64,000 bases of DNA from Magallana gigas (Eukaryota). Positions 477 through 44,252 of this stretch are shown piece by piece; the stretch's first letter is position 1; each line of letters starts with the position of its first letter. Both the position numbers and the translations under genes were made by a program. The stretch is from contig NC_088855.1 of assembly GCF_963853765.1 (NCBI RefSeq), forward strand, positions 50,096,001 through 50,160,000. The letters run 5' to 3'. The notes under the pieces were generated by a model that did not search any database, had not been told where the DNA came from, and saw nothing but the letters and a program-made list of their open reading frames with translations.

Positions 477-15302
<14,826 letters not shown>

Positions 15303-35883: not shown

Positions 35884-36635
35884 TTGTAATATACTTGAAG
35901 TTTTTGTTGTTGGTTGAACTAAGCTACATGTAAGATTACACAAAGGTATATACACAATAGTTATTGTAAAACCTCTAGGGAGAGGGTAAAAAAGTTAGTC
36001 GTGTTGTCATGCAAAGTGTTGGAAGATTTTGTGTGTGGTGTAGGGGTGATTTTTTTGGTGAGGCCATCAGTTAATTGATTTTTCACATTTGTGAAATAAC
36101 AAAAAAACTTATACATGTACAAGAATTCGGTATTGGGGTGAAGATCTACTAATGAAAGATGCCTACAGGTTTATGAAATCAAGGATATAAATTCTTTTAA
36201 TAATGCTCTATAACAAGAGCTTTCTTTGGGTTTTTTTTTTAAATCGAACTTTATTTATTTTACAACGATTGATAAGCAAGTTCTACAACTTATATTAATA
36301 TCTGTCGTTGGCACGGATGTTAGCGCGAGGGGGTCATTGGTGTGGGAAGAACCCACTTTCTTCCTTGTTAGGGTGTACAAGGGCTTAAAATTTAAGTAAA
36401 CACAAAGCAAAATCTTGTTTTTAACTGTCAGTTTCATATAACTTAAAGGAAATAAGTAACAAATCTTGAGTTTTGTCCTTTTTTTACTAATAAAACATAT
36501 TTATTGGGTACAGTCTCGTTTTCTACATAATTCCTTTAAAGCTGTATAGAACAGGAAAAAGAAATCAATTACATGTATCGTAATGGTTCTAGCACCAAGG
36601 AGACACTAGAATCATTTACCAGATCTTGACTTTAA

Positions 36636-36825
36636 GGTGGTATGGGACACTATAAGTCATGAGTTCGAATCCCGGTAGGACTTTTATAATTATTACCTTT
36701 CCAAAAAAAATGTTAAAACACATCTTTTGGTCAAATATTGTAAGATTTGAAAATTCTAAATTCTACTTTGATTATAATGTACTTTTATCCACATTGATAT
36801 CGACAGGTGCCACATGCATACCACC
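36636..36825 (+). mobile_element. Internally deleted Kolobok-like MITE, same family as 7946-8255
   Basis: ttaa|GGTGGTATG...CATACCACC|ttag. Shared internal sequence (tacctttccaaaa, aaatattgtaa.atttgaaaatt) and B box gagttcgaatccc. Confidence 0.65.
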
Positions 36826-37459
36826 TTAGAAGATTTTGAACGTCAATGTTTTTTCAGACGATCGAGCTAACATTTTGTCTATATTGATATAACTTGAAAA
36901 TGTACAGTATTTTCCGACTTTATTTGCAGTTACAAACAGACTTGCTAAAATGACGCATTTATTACGCTGTACTTCAGAGAAGACAATTATAAGAGTGACC
37001 CTACGATTTAGATATGCCAAAAAATGTTAATTTTATACGGTTTTCCATTTTAAAAAGGTTGCGTTCCCCTGAAATAAATGTTGAAGACTTCTTACATTTT
37101 GACTAAAGACATTACGCCACAATTTGACATTTCCGGGTCGAAACTAATCTTTATTTTTTATTTATTTATAATAAAGACATAGAAATAAATAAAATTGCTC
37201 TGTTCTTCACGGGATATTTCAAATAATCTGAAGAATTATCCCAGTTGGTACCTGCAAATATAGAGAAAACGATTGAGCTTTGTAGATTCATACTTTTTCA
37301 GTACAGCTGAACTACATGTATCAATTACTTATTTTTGGTCTAAAATTAATTTTATTAATCTGTAATTATTTTCACACAAAACATGAAAGAAATCGAGGGT
37401 GGTTGAACACACGCTATATTCTTCGCGCATGTGTAAAATGTACATGATGGAAAAAGAGA

Positions 37460-38001
37460 TTACCGCCATTTCTTGCCGTAAGACCGTGTTCGACAAACCC
37501 CGACTTCTCCCTGGGGGATTTCTCTCAGCCCCGTCCCCACACAGGTAAGTCCAGGAAGGCAGGGGCAGGTGAATCTGTGACCAACGTGGCAGCCTACCAA
37601 TTTTCATAAGAAAATGGTTATTGACCATTACTTTCCAATTTCCCTCCAAATCATTCGATGTGAAGATAATTGACATTATAGACGTACCTTGATTTAGACC
37701 CCCGTAACGCGTGCATCTGCCGCCGGAATTGCCACAACTGGCGAGGGATCGCTTGCCCCTGAGCGGCTTAACACAGCAGTGGAGTTCGGGACAATCGCTG
37801 TCATCATTACAACAGGTGTCCGAACTCTACACGACAGCAGAGATTGAATAATTTTTAAAAAATCTAAATGACAAATTCAGCCTATTTTTTTTTTTTTGGC
37901 TAGAAAATAGCAATGAAGAGTACAAAAGAATTTTTTTTTCTTACCTCCCCAACTTGCAAAATCGCTACGATCAAAACGACCGAACATAACAGGACATTCA
38001 T
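37460..38001 (-). CDS. Secreted cysteine-rich prokineticin/colipase-fold peptide precursor A, 109 aa, 3 exons
   Basis: Exons 38001-37945, 37826-37688, 37593-37460 with canonical GT-AG, phases 0 and 1. Protein: MNVLLCSVVLIVAILQVGESSDTCCNDDSDCPELHCCVKPLRGKRSLASCGNSGGRCTRYGGLNQGCHVGHRFTCPCLPGLTCVGTGLREIPQGEVGVCRTRSYGKKWR. Signal peptide, 12 Cys in the mature part, CPCLPGLTC prokineticin-type motif. Confidence 0.88.
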
Positions 38002-38474
38002 GTTTCTTATCGACTTCTGCTCTAATCAGACTTAACATGTTCTTCGGATTTTATTATTTTGACCTGGGAATTTTGATGCACTGTATAATTAATGTTTTCC
38101 TTGTTCTTGTAAAATGTCTTGCTTGGTAACCCTCATGAATAACCAAAAGTTGGTATAATAAGATTTAGCCAGTTTTAAGCGCGGTTCTATACATTGTATG
38201 CAAATGGTAAGCTTTATACTGGGCCGGGGAACCACCTTGTCTCTACCTTTGCATTCTGTTTTTTCATTGGCAATATAATCAAATATTTACATTTTCAACT
38301 GTCTTTGTCTGTGTTAACATTACGAATCAATTTTGAAGCTAAAAATTTTAATAAAATAATGAGCGACAAAAAATGGGCGTGTCTCATAGCATAACCGACA
38401 AACGGTATTGGCTGCGCCGCGTAGTAATACATAGCATGTTCGCGAAAAAATGGTGGTTTTAAAATGTTGTTTAA

Positions 38475-38804
38475 GGTGGCTCACTACACATTGAAATTTT
38501 TTCTCAAATCAGCAGAAAATTACTTGATTATGATAGATATCATAATGGATAAGAAGTTTTCAAGCCAAGTAGGCAAATTTGGATGAAAAATTACATTTTC
38601 GAAAATTTAATTCAGTAAACATCAGCAAAAGCACTAGGCGGATTCGAACTCTGGTATGCAGTTCAGAAGCCCAATACTTTAACCACTTAGGTACGACGAT
38701 ATACTACCGAATCGAAAGATATGAACAATTTAACAAAGCATTTAAATCGCCATCTTGTGACGTTGTCTTAAAAAGTATAAGTCTGGGTGTAGTGAGAGAG
38801 TACC
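38475..38804. mobile_element. Kolobok-like MITE with internal tRNA-like segment on the minus strand
   Basis: TTAA at 38471-38474 and 38805-38808. TIR GGTGGCTCACTACAC / GTGTAGTGAGAGAGTACC. Reverse-strand A box tacctaagtgg and B box agttcgaatcc at 38631-38694. Confidence 0.65.
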
Positions 38805-38868
38805 TTAAAGTGTACTAATTGGAAATAATATATATATATATAAATAAATCTGGATTTGACCATGCCCC

Positions 38869-38957
38869 CACAGGGGCCAAGCCCGTTTTAACATTAATTT
38901 CAATGTAACCATTATGGTTGCATTGAAATTAATGTTAAAACAGGCTTGGCCCCTGTG
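38869..38957. mobile_element. 89-bp fully palindromic MITE (CA..TG ends, 8-bp TSD; P- or hAT-like)
   Basis: cacaggggccaagcc.gttttaacattaatttcaatg / cattgaaattaatgttaaaac.ggcttggcccctgtg. TSD CATGCCCC at 38861-38868 and 38958-38965. Confidence 0.8.
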
Positions 38958-39009
38958 CATGCCCCGACCAAAATTATCACGTACCTCATACTAGTAATAC
39001 TAAAAGAAT

Positions 39010-39710
39010 GATTCCTCATTCCTGTTATTATTGTGTAATATTGCACCATAGTTCTTTTACATAAAAAAATTTGTAGTTATAATTCTATGTAAAATTTGAT
39101 ATTGAAGCCAGTTGAGTTTACTTTTTTGGACCGCTTTAAAACAGAGACAGTAGATTTTAATCCATTCTAAATCGGTGAAATTTTCTCCAAGATCTCTCCA
39201 TCTAATTGATGATGTTATCGGTTCTTTTTTTTTCAATTAAAATGTTATACATTTCCTTACATCCTTTTGTATCCCTATAAAAAAGATAAATAGAGTTCGG
39301 AATTTTAGGTCCATATTCTTTGCTCATATCTGTATTATCTATGTGTTTTTTTACTAAAGAAAGTGGTACAAATCATTTTCCAATTTTTTTATCAGTTTGT
39401 TTCTGGATTGGGTAGACTTAATATTAAGTGATTTAATTTTGGTATAATTAATGATTTTATTATTTTAAGTCTCCCTATCGGTGTTAGCTTTTTATGTTTC
39501 CATTGGTTCATTATTTTATTGATTTCTGATAATTTAGGAGAATAGTTTAGCTCGGACATTTCTTCAAGATTAATTGAAAATTTAATTCCGAGAAGGTCAA
39601 ATGCTGTGTTCCAGTCTAACTTCCATTGAGTATGGTGAAAAACATCTTTAGAAAAAAAAATTTCGCCTAAAAATTTTGACTATCAACAAGAATGGTAGTC
39701 ATGGCAATAG
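39010..39710 (-). mobile_element. Degenerate LINE (Tx1/L1-like) ORF2 fragment
   Basis: Minus-strand translations FDLLGIKFSINLEEMSELNYSPKL, YLFYRDTKGCKEMYNIL and WIKIYCLCFKAVQKSKLNWLQYQILHRIITT resemble post-RT regions of Tx1-type LINEs. Stops, frameshifts and an internal deletion are present. Confidence 0.6.
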
Positions 39711-40226
39711 ACTAAGATCGAATTAATGAGGGTAAATTAAAATAAAAAGAAATTACAAGAATTGGATCAGAAACTGCAGAAGAAAAAGTAAGTTTTCCGA
39801 ATCCACACAGGTCGAAACGTTTATTTTTATTGGTATATACACATAATGATTGTATGTATACTCTAATTGATATCTTTTCCGCCCAGATATATATAACTCC
39901 TACATATGTAAATGTATACAACCAGAGTTTTGGAAATTGGCTTAACAGGGTCTAATGTCTATTTTGCAGTATATATTCTATTTATGTTAATGAAGTTTTT
40001 CCAAAATCTCCCCCAAATATAGATAGAAAAGAAGAGGGGGGGGGGTACTGATGTGATTGTCCGAAGGCTGGGAGTTTGAGATGTTTGTGGTGTGACAAAA
40101 TTTAAAAATGAGAAATCAGTGGGTTTTGGTATGTCGTTATATTTATTTCAAAGATTGCTTTGCATTTGAATATGAATATTCTTCTTCGTATATGCAGATT
40201 CCTAAAACAAAATAGAAATAAAATAA

Positions 40227-40359
40227 NNNNNNNNNNNNNNNNNNNNNNNNNNNNNNNNNNNNNNNNNNNNNNNNNNNNNNNNNNNNNNNNNNNNNNNNNN
40301 NNNNNNNNNNNNNNNNNNNNNNNNNNNNNNNNNNNNNNNNNNNNNNNNNNNNNNNNNNN
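40227..40359. other. Assembly gap (N run)
   Basis: 133 consecutive N. Confidence 0.99.
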
Positions 40360-40601
40360 AAGTAGACGTTTTTACAGTCCTTATTCAGAATTTAAAAAAA
40401 CCCAAAAAAACTGGTATTTAAATTCTTATGTAGAAAACATGCGCGGATCCAGATTTTTTTTTTATTTTTTTTTTTTTTGGGGGGGGGGGGGGTTAAAATA
40501 ATCTAATTCTGTATCATTTAGCTGTCATTTCAGTTCATCAAGCTATGAACGTCCGGTGATCCCGAATGAATTTCAAAAAGTACTGTGTACCTTTTGACTT
40601 C

Positions 40602-42265
40602 TTATCCATAATGGTATCTCTGGCAAACTCCAATCTCCCCCTGGGGAAACTCGAATTCCCCTGTCCCAACGCATGTCAAGCCTGACAAACAAGGGCATGT
40701 GACATGGTGACCCACATGGCATTCTGTGGTGAGAAAATTATAAAATTATAAAAAAAAAAAACAACCCAAAAAACATATATACATACAGTTCAAAATGATA
40801 ACAGCAATACATAAATTGTATATACACATTAACATGAACGTCTTGTGTTACTCAAAAGTTGCAGTTTTAGCTCACCTGAGCTGAAAACTCCAGTGAGCTT
40901 TGCTGTCGTCTGTCTGCCCGTAAACTTTTTACATTCTCAACTTCTTCTCAAAAACTGCTTGACCAATTTCAACCAAACTTGGCACAAAGCACCCTTGGCC
41001 GAAGGGGATTTATAGTTAAAAATCAAGTATCAAGAGGGGATAATTAGCAGAGACATAGATGTCTTAATTATAACTATACTGATATTATATATATAGCAGA
41101 CCTATTTTGTTTTGTTGTGTTCTTACTTTCCCCGGGAGCGCCAAATCGGGTGCAGGTCCCACTTCCACATCCGATGGCTCGTCTGCCTCTCACTGGGCGA
41201 ACACAGCAGTAATATTGTGGACAATCATTGTCACTGTCACAACATTGCCCCTGTAAAAACCATCGTAACGCATATAAATCAAAACAATTATAAGCATAGA
41301 ACTTTCTTGAACATTTGAATATCCATGCACGTACAGATGTAATCCATTTGCCTCATAGACTGCGATATTTGGAATAATTATGGGAAAATAAAAGAAAAAT
41401 CATAGGATATATTGCCGTAACTTTTCATCAGTTTTCAAAAGTAGAAGGAGTCCGACATCACCTCAATGAATACGTGTGTGTGTGTGGAGGGGGGGTTAAA
41501 TTCTTCAACCAAGATTTACACTTATCATAAAATTGGGTCAGATTTCTGATAAATCGTTCTATATTTTTTTTAAAGACCCGTAACACAATTAACAATGAGG
41601 GGGCTTCCCTCCATTTTTCTCAGCAACCCCAATACTATATATCCTTAGTTCCTATAACTGTTTGTGAGCTTTCGACTCTTTTTTTTTTTAATATCGTGTT
41701 CATTGTAATTACCTGGTACTATATTGTATACACCACACAAGTTTTTTGTGATTATTAATTTTGAATATGCAATGATTTCTTTCCATTTAATTAACCCCGG
41801 TGTAATGTCATTGATTATATTAATTAGTAATTCTCGCAATCAAAACAGTACCGAGTTTTAGTCAACCACACACTATACATGTTTAGTTGAACATCTGTTG
41901 CATAAATCTGTGAACTCAATGCCTGTGTGCACTGTAGATATTACTGGTTATTTAAATAATAGTAAAGACTGTAAATCAATCACTATAATGTCGATATAAA
42001 CCGGTATGTACAAGTTATCATTAGCAGAAGGAAAAGTCAACCATATAAATTAAAGAATAATCTAAAAAATCACGTTATTTTTGTTCAACCTGAAAATTAG
42101 CACCTGTTTATACTGTATGATTTCGATCATAGTTTATTTAACAAAAAAATGTGCGAAATAATAATAATAATAAAGGAACATAATATCAATGGAAACTTTT
42201 ACCTGGATGCAGTCGAATTCCAGCACCACAAATAGAAGAACCAGACCGCATGCTAGCAGGTTCAT
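40602..42265 (-). CDS. Secreted cysteine-rich prokineticin/colipase-fold peptide precursor B, 102 aa, 3 exons
   Basis: Exons 42265-42203, 41250-41127, 40723-40602, same phases as copy A. Protein: MNLLACGLVLLFVVLEFDCIQGQCCDSDNDCPQYYCCVRPVRGRRAIGCGSGTCTRFGAPGEKCHVGHHVTCPCLSGLTCVGTGEFEFPQGEIGVCQRYHYG. TATA-like run ~30 bp upstream of the ATG (42295-42302). Confidence 0.88.
40866..41040 (+). mobile_element. Truncated 5' end of an oyster Helitron-N2/CvA (pearl)-like HINE
   Basis: ttttagctcacctgagctgaaaactccagtgagcttt...gtcgtctgtctg...caaccaaacttggcacaaagca, recognised from memory of this common oyster family. Lies in intron 2 of peptide B. Confidence 0.65.
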
Positions 42266-44252
42266 GTTAACACAGTACATGTACTACCTGACGTATATAT
42301 AGAGTAAATCTATGAATAATGGATCCTAGGATTTTGATCATATAAAGTCAATTATGGAATTTCCCCAATACGCAAATGTCAATTGCAATTGGCCACATTA
42401 CAGTAAATGTATTCCAGAGTGAAATATATACAATTTTAAAAAAGGTAGATAAAAACCAATCTATTTACTGCTATATATACACGTACATTTTTAAGACCCA
42501 CAAAATTCCATAAATTCATTAATTCAAAGCAACATATAAGTTCCTAATTCTTTGAGGAAATTACACTACCTGTGAATTTAATTACCGAGAATATTAATTG
42601 GATAAAATTATTTTTCAAACAACACGCCTCTCCCCATTATAAACAAAGAAGACATATGTCTTTGCCTGGAAGAACTGCAGAACTGTAACTCTTCGGAACA
42701 TGCATACCGTAGGTGTTTAGTTTACGGTGAACAAAAAATGAGATTTTTTTTTTTACTTATTAATTAACCCAATTTGTTAAAACATCGTGCTAGTTTTAGG
42801 ACTTATTAACCTAATTTTATGGAAGTATTTGATACAAACACACGTTCTTGAAGTGTCTATTTTGGCGGGGTTTTTTTATCAAGAAAACACTACGGCCTTA
42901 TTATAAAGTATTTTAAAGATGATTTTTGTAACTATTTAAAATCTGTATGTTGTCCTTAACCTAGGGAAATTATGTTATATTGAATTATTTAGAAATGAAG
43001 AAATTTTTTTTGAGAGTCATTATCGATGATCATTCAGGTCGGACGCGATCAAATCCAATAAAGGGCGAAGGGCTTTATGATATATTTTTCACGCTCCGAC
43101 CGTAATGATATCTTATAATATTCAAAAGAATGATTCCTTTCTACTTATATTTTTTAATTTTCTGCGATTGTTTGAATAAATATCAATTAAAGTATATGCA
43201 TTATAATGTTATCTTTTTTATTTCGCATAATTATACAAACCCCGCTTGGGCCCCAACAATATGTCATTTGCGTCATTGGACTATACCTTACAAATTTTTA
43301 TTTGTAGCGTTATCCCTGACAGATATACTGGAAATGCTAATAATATTGAACCATTAACGGTTATCAAGTATAAAATGTTTTCAAAACAAGCTTGTGTGCC
43401 CACAAACTCTTAGAATATTGGTTACCAACGAAACAATTCATGGATATATAAAAAATCCCAGCATTTTTTTTTTTTCCCACTTTCCTCACTTGAAAGGCAC
43501 TCCAGATCTAGTTGCATGTATTTTGTTCCAAACAAACAAATTCCGATGCATTTATTGTTTATACATGTATCTGACTTGCTTAGAATTACTTTCATAACCT
43601 AATTTTTTTAGACCACGTGTCTCAAGAAAGTCCATGAAGCAATATACGGTAATGTTTAAGGAATCTTATTACATATTTTCTTAATTGCCAATAAATTAAT
43701 GCTGTGCAAATAAATACATGTATATTAAAATGAATCATTACAAAAAATTCAAGTTGCTTTAAAGAATTCTTATCAGATAAAAGACAATCATACTTTGTGG
43801 TATTGTATACCTGTTATTTGATTTTATATTACACTATTTTCATAATGTTTTATTAACTTAATAGAATTTCAGTTTACTTTACATTGGTAAAATTTGCAAC
43901 ATGCAAAACATATTCATACACATTTGAATTTATTACTATTGTCAGTCAACCGTTTCATGAAAATCACAGAATGAATCTAGGGTAAAATTTTAGTTACCCG
44001 TAACGTATAAATCTATAAATAGAATATATATATATGTACTTATATAAAAAAAAAATGCTGCATACATGCAGTAGCACATTACTCTCATATACATAAATGA
44101 TAGATTATGTTTCCATTATTTAGGAAAATAATGCATTCAATCCTCATTCATATTCATATACAAAACAATTTGTTTCATTTTCGCAAGACATTCTTTTTAT
44201 AATAGGTCATGTTTCAAACACTAACACTATAGTTAACACAGACAGCAGGGCT

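Follow-up and report, generated by a model that had tools for sequence, protein, structure and literature searches.

Two tandem, expressed genes for prokineticin-type cysteine-rich proteins with a predicted colipase fold in the oyster Magallana gigas

We examined a window of 64,000 nucleotides (nt) from the genome of the oyster Magallana gigas (NCBI RefSeq assembly GCF_963853765.1, contig NC_088855.1, positions 50,096,001 to 50,160,000), which is the whole stretch of DNA that was analysed, and in it two adjacent minus-strand genes, here named copy A and copy B. With a probability of roughly 85%, we conclude that these are two anciently duplicated, expressed tandem genes, that the product of each has a predicted signal peptide and, after it, a single cysteine-rich domain of the prokineticin type (colipase fold), and that within the secreted prokineticin/astakine-like proteins of Lophotrochozoa the two make up a subfamily restricted to oysters. 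The pair consists of conserved, already annotated members of a known family, with modest structural novelties. An original prediction, made from the sequence of this region, had described intact tandem paralogs of the prokineticin/colipase fold that lack the AVIT N-terminus and carry two additional cysteines, and profile searches, structure models and alignment agree with that description.

The gene models were rebuilt from the raw letters, and gene coordinates are positions in the window. The parts of the two genes are:

Copy A exon 1, coding part: 42203–42265, minus strand; 21 codons from the ATG at 42265, encoding the predicted signal peptide; phase 0 donor
Copy A exon 2: 41127–41250, minus strand; N-terminal half of the domain (GQCC...APGE); phase 1 donor
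Copy A exon 3: 40591–40723, minus strand; C-terminal half of the domain (KCHVGH...YHYG)
Copy A intron in the 3′ untranslated region (3′UTR): 40202–40590, minus strand; GT..AG, holds the assembly gap at 40227–40359
Copy A exon 4: 40124–40201, minus strand; 3′UTR only, with AATAAA at 40147–40142; one RNA contig stops at 40124
Copy B exon 1: 37945–38001, minus strand; 19 codons from the ATG at 38001, encoding the predicted signal peptide; phase 0 donor
Copy B exon 2: 37688–37826, minus strand; SSDTCC...GLNQ; phase 1 donor
Copy B exon 3: 37464–37593, minus strand; GCHVGH...SYGKKW and the first two bases of an Arg codon; GT donor at 37463–37462
Copy B exon 4, coding part: 37236–37251, minus strand; completes the Arg codon, then YQLG and the stop TAA at 37238–37236; acceptor AG at 37253–37252

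The product of copy A is 102 amino acids long and ends ...CQRYHYG; its terminal Gly codon (40607–40605) is followed by the stop TAA (40604–40602) and 11 nt of 3′UTR up to the donor. The product of copy B is 113 amino acids long and ends ...CRTRSYGKKWRYQLG, and its 3′UTR runs on past the coding part of exon 4, with AATAAA-rich sequence near 37165. In copy A exon 2, the basic motif RGRR is encoded at 41190–41179 and the codons of the two extra cysteines are at 41244–41242 and 41169–41167. The equivalent positions in copy B exon 2 are 37760–37749 for RGKR, and 37814–37812 and 37736–37734 for the extra cysteines. The intron phases (0, then 1) are the same in both copies and, exactly as predicted, so is the cysteine spacing, CC-x5-C-x4-CC-x11/12-C-x4/6-C-x9-C-x7-CPC-x5-C-x15-C.

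Two minus-strand genes of three exons each had been predicted. Exons 1 to 3 stand as proposed, but RNA adds a fourth exon to both genes. In copy A, junction 42203/41250 was found in contigs of RNA runs X1, X2 and X7 and in one raw poly(A) read of X21, junction 41127/40723 in contigs of X1 and X7 and in three raw poly(A) reads of X21, and junction 40591/40201 in contigs from two studies (X1 record 2, 444 nt; X7 record 14, 185 nt). Junction 37688/37593 of copy B was found in contigs of two runs (X2 and X7). Thus four GT-AG junctions are present in RNA contigs, in two or three studies each, and three of them (42203/41250, 41127/40723 and 37688/37593) had been foreseen. The first mates of the raw poly(A) reads lie on the plus strand, as they should for minus-strand RNA if the library is stranded in the usual way. 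Intron 2 of copy A is kept in one contig (X2 record 10).

The X2 and X7 contigs depart from the genomic sequence at 37461, and their loose letters are an exact match to 37219–37248. As this match lies behind the AG at 37253–37252, the true donor in copy B is the GT at 37463–37462. The TAA that had been read as the stop after YGKKWR is split by this splice, and the earlier reading was therefore wrong. Of the Tyr-Gly ends predicted for the two products, the YG-stop of copy A stands, whereas copy B ends ...SYGKKWRYQLG-stop via exon 4.

A run of N at 40227–40359 sits inside the 3′UTR intron of copy A and is crossed by no reading frame. Since RNA contigs of two studies splice 40591 to 40201, both flanks of this gap belong to one transcript in one orientation, and the gap leaves only the length of the last intron of copy A uncertain. 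The neighbourhood is also collinear with a gap-free chromosome of Crassostrea virginica, with an ADAT2-like deaminase gene, NDH-2, copy A, copy B and Spb1/FtsJ in the same order.

The N-termini of both products are hydrophobic, as had been proposed, with a hydrophobic core of 13–15 residues after the Met and small residues at plausible −1/−3 positions. The N-terminus encoded by copy B exon 1 is identical to that of the public M. gigas protein. Residue 20 of copy B (codon 37826–37824) is Ser in this genome and Cys in the public M. gigas, Crassostrea angulata, C. virginica and Ostrea edulis sequences; residue 19 of copy A is Cys here and Arg in C. virginica. Because the Cys varies at these two positions, it is probably lost together with the signal peptide, and residue 20 of copy B (Cys/Ser) is compatible with the −1 position for signal peptidase. 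Comparison with another M. gigas contig revealed two substitutions, 3 nt apart, at the intron 1/exon 2 boundary of copy B (37824–37829), which change the acceptor from cag to tag, keeping the AG, and codon 20 from TGT (Cys) to AGT (Ser). Five codons before the start ATG of copy A there is another in-frame ATG (42278–42280), whose context is weaker (T at −3). RNA contigs extend past this upstream ATG (42280), leaving copy A with two candidate start codons. The possible Gln start of a mature product had been assigned to the wrong gene: it is found in the upstream copy (ATG at 42265), copy A here, and not in copy B.

The original prediction had called the pair hidden. Both genes are indeed absent from a prokaryote-style list of open reading frames (ORFs), but copy B is in RefSeq and both copies are in UniProt, under prokineticin-type names. 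Copy B corresponds to RefSeq XP_011418328 (LOC105321655, latest name "AVIToxin-VAR1") and to UniProt A0A8W8KDR9, apart from C20S. Copy A differs from UniProt A0A8W8KG71 at three residues, all immediately ahead of the basic loop; both UniProt entries are named "Prokineticin domain-containing protein". While copy A has this UniProt entry, no M. gigas RefSeq protein matched it in the database searches made. The C. virginica orthologs are "toxin MIT1-like" (102 amino acids) and LOC111133230 (103 amino acids), the C. angulata ortholog is LOC128189741 (113 amino acids), and the O. edulis ortholog is "prokineticin-1-like" (104 amino acids). The patch of copy A that differs from UniProt (41197–41214, codons 34–40) reads YYCCVRP here and YNCCVHS in the M. 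gigas entry, and is a variable patch before the invariant RGRR. The X1 RNA contig differs from the genome at 41198, 41199 and 41214, within the same patch.

Five Cragi-prokineticins were described in Crassostrea gigas in 2021 (PMC8398477), and prokineticin-like peptides are widespread across Lophotrochozoa (PMC6425005). When the accessions, rather than the sequences, were compared, the Cragi-prokineticins (XM_011448103, XM_011458732, XP_011448815 and two XR_ records) showed no visible match to XP_011418328. Literature searches with locus names, accessions and peptide strings found nothing.

Synonymous divergence (dS) is saturated, and the proportions of non-synonymous (pN) and synonymous (pS) differences are therefore given in place of omega. 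For the mature region, pN/pS was 0.112/0.745 between A orthologs, 0.177/0.571 between B orthologs (M. gigas-type versus C. virginica) and 0.27/0.79 between the paralogs. A dN/dS-type comparison had been suggested for the pair, and in these low values it reveals purifying selection. With few replacement changes against saturated synonymous sites, the sequences indicate an old duplication under strong purifying selection. Across six oyster sequences, the 12 cysteines, R42, G43, R45, CHVGH, CPCL.GLTCVGTG and PQGE.G are all invariant. So is a YG pair near the C-terminus, which is terminal except in copy B of M. gigas and C. angulata. The gene order ADAT2-NDH2-A-B-Spb1 is common to M. gigas and C. 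virginica.

In this genome, the 12-cysteine pattern is found in copies A and B only. Relatives with 10 cysteines cluster at C3:38.27–38.30 Mb, and one more relative is on C6. The cluster (C3:38265000–38301000) contains five second-half exons and two or three first-half exons, one with an early stop. Public proteins identical or nearly identical to the spliced products stood in for them in database and model searches. When copy B exon 2 was used to query 1.84 billion representatives with phmmer, only five matches were returned, namely three read-through ORFs on genomic contigs, the O. edulis ortholog and one three-domain relative. A profile search with the six oyster sequences found no relatives outside oysters, and a search with one domain of the three-domain relative returned fragments only. 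As to its wider taxonomic range, the 12-cysteine subfamily appears, in the searches made, to be oyster-restricted so far. A tree with the domains of the three-domain relative as the outgroup was unresolved, with all forks weak and very long outgroup branches; it separates only the A orthologs from the B orthologs and O. edulis.

Assignment to the family is based on the cysteine framework, profile comparison and predicted structures. All ten positions of the framework C-x5-C-x4-CC-...-C-x9-C-...-CPC-x5-C-...-C are invariant in the six oyster sequences, which have the two extra cysteines in addition. When a profile of the six proteins was compared with all PDB sequences, Bv8 (E 0.011) and MIT1 (E 0.04) were the top matches, though weak, with colipases lower. 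AlphaFold models have a predicted local distance difference test (pLDDT) score of 73 for the copy B type and 79 for the copy A type, with the same strand order in both. Foldseek placed MIT1 first for the copy B model (E 1.3e-3, probability 1.0), followed by the C-terminal domain of Dickkopf-1 (Dkk1-C) and colipase. With VIA-align, the same model matched MIT1 with Z 7.9 (root-mean-square deviation 3.2 over 68 residues, 31% identity), colipase with 7.3, Dkk1-C with 7.1 and Bv8 with 5.5. The copy A model, compared with 48,161 chains without Foldseek, matched colipase (Z 7.6), Dkk1-C (7.5), Bv8 (5.7, 38% identity) and a MIT-like spider toxin (5.2), and the matches after these four had Z of about 4. 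In a language-model Atlas search, the nearest clusters were molluscan colipase/aranetoxin-like proteins and arthropod Prokineticin. The models thus support a colipase/MIT1 three-dimensional fold for both predicted products, and the colipase fold that had been proposed for checking with AlphaFold was recovered by structure searches with MIT1, colipase, Dkk1-C and Bv8 at the top.

Several observations weigh against the conclusion that these are expressed members of the prokineticin/astakine-like family. A match to Pfam Prokineticin (PF06607) had been suggested as a check, and there is one, but it is weak (13–14 bits) and lies below the gathering score of 21.6 bits: copy A exon 3 scores 14.4 bits (E 0.048), and the O. 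edulis ortholog, taken at full length, reaches 13.3 bits (E 0.11) across positions 4–88 of the profile. The alignments behind the AlphaFold models have only eight rows, and a Z of 7–8 is "middling" by the tool's own scale. The junction between exons 1 and 2 of copy B was not seen among the aligned RNA contigs and reads; several RNA-labelled runs hold 50–88% of eight sampled words from the exon 1 region, and the join is supported by public gene models. Finally, hardly anything is known of what the family does in molluscs, and CgAstakine, the one oyster member whose function has been tested, is a distant paralog encoded elsewhere in the genome. Other Pfam matches, to Colipase_C and tachystatin, were all sub-threshold (single exons and one full-length ortholog).

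The features that distinguish the pair within the family are the basic loop, the extra cysteines and the terminal Gly. A conserved basic site and a C-terminal Gly had both been predicted, and R-G-[KR]-R and the Gly are each present in 6/6 oyster sequences; the YGKK that had been noted with them is not conserved. With Ser or Ala as the next residue, the R-G-[KR]-R loop conforms to the furin consensus, and its flanking residues vary. Invariance extends to the Gly in front of the dibasic pair, and this Gly would become an amidation donor after trimming. Loops of the G-[KR]-R type are also found in distant 10-cysteine relatives (RPIGKRQ, QPIGRRQ and PLRGKRA). Within the domain, both models are least confident in this loop (pLDDT 56–61). 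One extra cysteine directly precedes the first framework cysteine and the other lies 4–5 residues after R-G-[KR]-R. They are Cys24 and Cys49 in copy A and Cys24 and Cys50 in copy B. The oyster subfamily has both of them, and the 10-cysteine relatives have neither. Because they co-occur, the two most likely pair as a sixth disulfide, though the co-occurrence counts as one evolutionary event only.

The terminal Gly is encoded in three ways, by YG-stop in exon 3 of copy A (and, judged by the protein end, in O. edulis), by YQLG-stop in exon 4 of M. gigas copy B and by IYG-stop in exon 4 of the annotated model of C. virginica copy B. That Gly is kept while it is encoded in three ways argues for probable selection on it. 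YGKK is confined to copy B of M. gigas and C. angulata and, among the sequences compared, is lineage-specific and not a conserved signal. Metagenome/Logan contigs from other oyster material carry a copy A-type exon 3 that reads ...HYGWWIKWRED where the C. virginica genome has TGA after YG. The difference reflects either a polymorphic stop or another species as the source of the contigs. Amidation of the C-terminus is possible, with odds only a little short of even, and cleavage at R-G-[KR]-R by a furin-type convertase is a somewhat more tentative suggestion. Purifying selection, the invariant loop, the extra cysteine pair and the terminal Gly together argue that these are probably functional proteins.

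We infer, as the most likely course, that each product would enter the endoplasmic reticulum, drop its signal peptide, fold into a disulfide-locked colipase fold and, once secreted, work outside the cell as an astakine-like ligand or effector. In any further processing, a furin-type convertase cutting at R-G-[KR]-R would leave two chains held together by disulfides, and the exposed Gly residues could be amidated. As the receptor-activating N-terminus AVITGA is absent, copies A and B cannot act like vertebrate prokineticins. Their C6–C7 loop is short.

The readings of function differ mainly in what they make of the basic loop. In one, the proteins are prohormones that a convertase cuts at R-G-[KR]-R to release a two-chain neuropeptide or hormone with the exposed Gly amidated. 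Invariance of the furin consensus R-X-[KR]-R in 6/6 sequences with varying flanks favours this, as do the invariant Gly before the dibasic pair, which recurs in 10-cysteine relatives, a Gly that is terminal in every ortholog despite the different exons encoding it, and the detection by mass spectrometry of amidated C. gigas peptides (PMC8398477). Nevertheless, we consider it unlikely. In vertebrate prokineticins, a similar basic stretch occupies this position (SRNIRF in Bv8) and is not reported to be cut, such that the motif may instead be structural or a binding surface. The low pLDDT of the loop (56–61) is compatible with exposure but can equally be model uncertainty, YGKK is found only in copy B of M. 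gigas and C. angulata, and the published set of Cragi-prokineticins is expressed mainly in the digestive gland and not in ganglia (PMC8398477). More doubtful again is the full scheme, an oyster hormone with the prokineticin fold that is two-chain after furin-type cleavage, stapled by the sixth disulfide and amidated at up to two or three ends. If true, the N-chain would carry an Arg-amide and the C-terminal end a Tyr- or Leu-amide, and from M. gigas copy B a pentapeptide, WRYQL-amide, would be set free as well. The proteins would then be the first processed, amidated members of the colipase-fold superfamily, and would provide a handle on prokineticin-like signalling in protostomes that have neither AVIT nor prokineticin receptors.

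The loop could instead be the reactive site of a canonical (Laskowski-type) serine-protease inhibitor, digestive or immune, directed at trypsin- or furin-like proteases. NcTI, a MIT1-like digestive protein from a spider, inhibits trypsin at about 30 nM, with an exposed basic residue as the proposed reactive site (PMC9918498), and oyster prokineticin transcripts are reported mainly from the digestive gland (PMC8398477). An invariant R-G-[KR]-R loop flanked by cysteines, which an extra disulfide just downstream would stiffen, also fits such an inhibitor. We regard it as improbable, however, as the analogy comes from a single fold relative whose reactive site was derived from docking only, and the conserved terminal Gly is left unexplained. 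A role as antimicrobial or toxin-like defence effectors, rather than signalling ligands, is very improbable. Pointing that way are Pfam matches, weak and below threshold, to the antimicrobial knottin tachystatin A, the alignment of knottin-type toxins and of antimicrobial peptides to the C-terminal half of the models (Z 3–4), variation between alleles in the region before the basic loop, and the public names 'toxin MIT1-like' and 'AVIToxin-VAR1'. Yet these names are automatic similarity labels, the genome has only two copies, and a pN/pS of 0.15–0.3 with no excess of replacement changes speaks against an arms-race effector. We reject an artefact, in the form of chance frames, pseudogenes or a mis-join at the gap. 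The N gap does lie between the coding parts of the two genes, and exon 1 of copy B was not joined in the aligned RNA, but spliced RNA from several studies, the same gene order in C. virginica, strong purifying selection and a spliced transcript that bridges the gap leave this reading next to no chance.

In molluscs, little is yet understood of what prokineticin/astakine-like proteins do and which receptors they use. The pair of tandem colipase-fold genes is a clean two-gene subfamily in which three features, the extra cysteine pair, the invariant furin-type loop and the terminal Gly, would be under selection, and it is a convenient test of whether protostome colipase-fold ligands are matured by proteolysis, amidated, or serve as protease inhibitors. 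There is also value for annotation, as copy A had no M. gigas RefSeq protein match in the searches made and the true C-terminus of copy B is in a fourth exon.

Several other elements were found near the genes. Between copies A and B, a near-perfect palindrome at 38869–38957 has 44-nt arms that are 95% complementary and 1 nt apart. RNA contig depth there is in the hundreds to thousands, many contigs run into unrelated sequence at both ends, and Rfam gave no match; it looks like a high-copy hairpin element, similar to miniature inverted-repeat transposable elements. For a repeat at 40865–41029, in intron 2 of copy A, RNA contig depth in run X1 sums to 32,607, and C. virginica has similar sequence upstream of its copy A (about 9570–9880 of the compared locus). 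The repeat is probably a high-copy transcribed element and not part of copy A. Decayed ORF fragments at 39057–39660 resemble the tail of a non-long-terminal-repeat retrotransposon protein and are covered by a 1.4-kb RNA contig with many differences and a 514-letter replacement. Scans of 36000–43000 for tRNAs and against Rfam returned no match.

Among known systems, the products of copies A and B are close to the vertebrate prokineticins and the AVIT family (PK1, PK2/Bv8 and MIT1), which are among their best structural matches and are their best sequence-profile matches. Both groups are secreted (by prediction, for the oyster proteins), single-domain proteins with the 10-cysteine colipase framework C-x5-C-x4-CC...CPC-x5-C, and they share a C-x-[PR]-x-G-x-x-G-E-x-C-H stretch and a CPC[LS/LP]GL[TA]C motif. 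Prokineticin disulfides are C1–C4, C2–C5, C3–C7, C6–C9 and C8–C10 (PMC9918498). AVITGA is essential for binding to the prokineticin receptor, and no orthologs of that receptor have been reported in protostomes (PMC8398477). Copies A and B are without AVITGA, and their predicted mature N-termini read (G)QCCDSD and S(S)DTCCNDD, respectively. In a profile alignment, one extra oyster cysteine falls just before the first framework cysteine, and the second comes after the basic loop. The C6–C7 loop is x7 in the oyster proteins and x17 in the AVIT family, and the last loop is x15 and x9, respectively. The oyster proteins also have R-G-[KR]-R and the terminal Gly, and their PF06607 matches are sub-threshold.

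Astakines, including CgAstakine, are likewise invertebrate secreted proteins with a prokineticin domain and no AVIT N-terminus. CgAstakine is reported to promote haemocyte production (Li et al. 2016, as cited in PMC8398477 and PMC9797820). Quantitative PCR primers for CgAstakine (PMC9797820) map to another chromosome, at C9:17.52 Mb (17519049–17522066), and not to the locus of copies A and B. As the primers amplify C9:17.52 Mb, orthology of CgAstakine to either copy was rejected. The C9 gene encodes a 10-cysteine domain in a single exon, without G-[KR]-R and with a long Thr/Glu/His-rich C-terminal tail. The Cragi-prokineticins and the 10-cysteine cluster at C3:38.27–38.30 Mb come from the same species group as copies A and B and belong to their family. 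The C3 genes share with copies A and B an intron at the same place before the cysteine that opens the second half of the domain and G-[KR]-R after the CC doublet, though the C3 genes have 10 cysteines and only approximately 50% identity over short stretches.

The MIT-like atracotoxins and NcTI (PMC9918498) share with the oyster proteins a colipase/MIT1-like fold (U33-theraphotoxin, Z 5.0–5.2), an exposed basic loop residue and possibly expression in digestive organs. These are arthropod proteins with five disulfides and without the convertase motif, and the likeness found is one of predicted fold. Profile matches to colipase and the Dickkopf C-terminal domain are much weaker (E 2–9), and Dickkopf has an additional N-terminal domain, but the fold predicted for copies A and B appears to be the same as theirs, with Z 6.7–7.6 over 61–73 residues.

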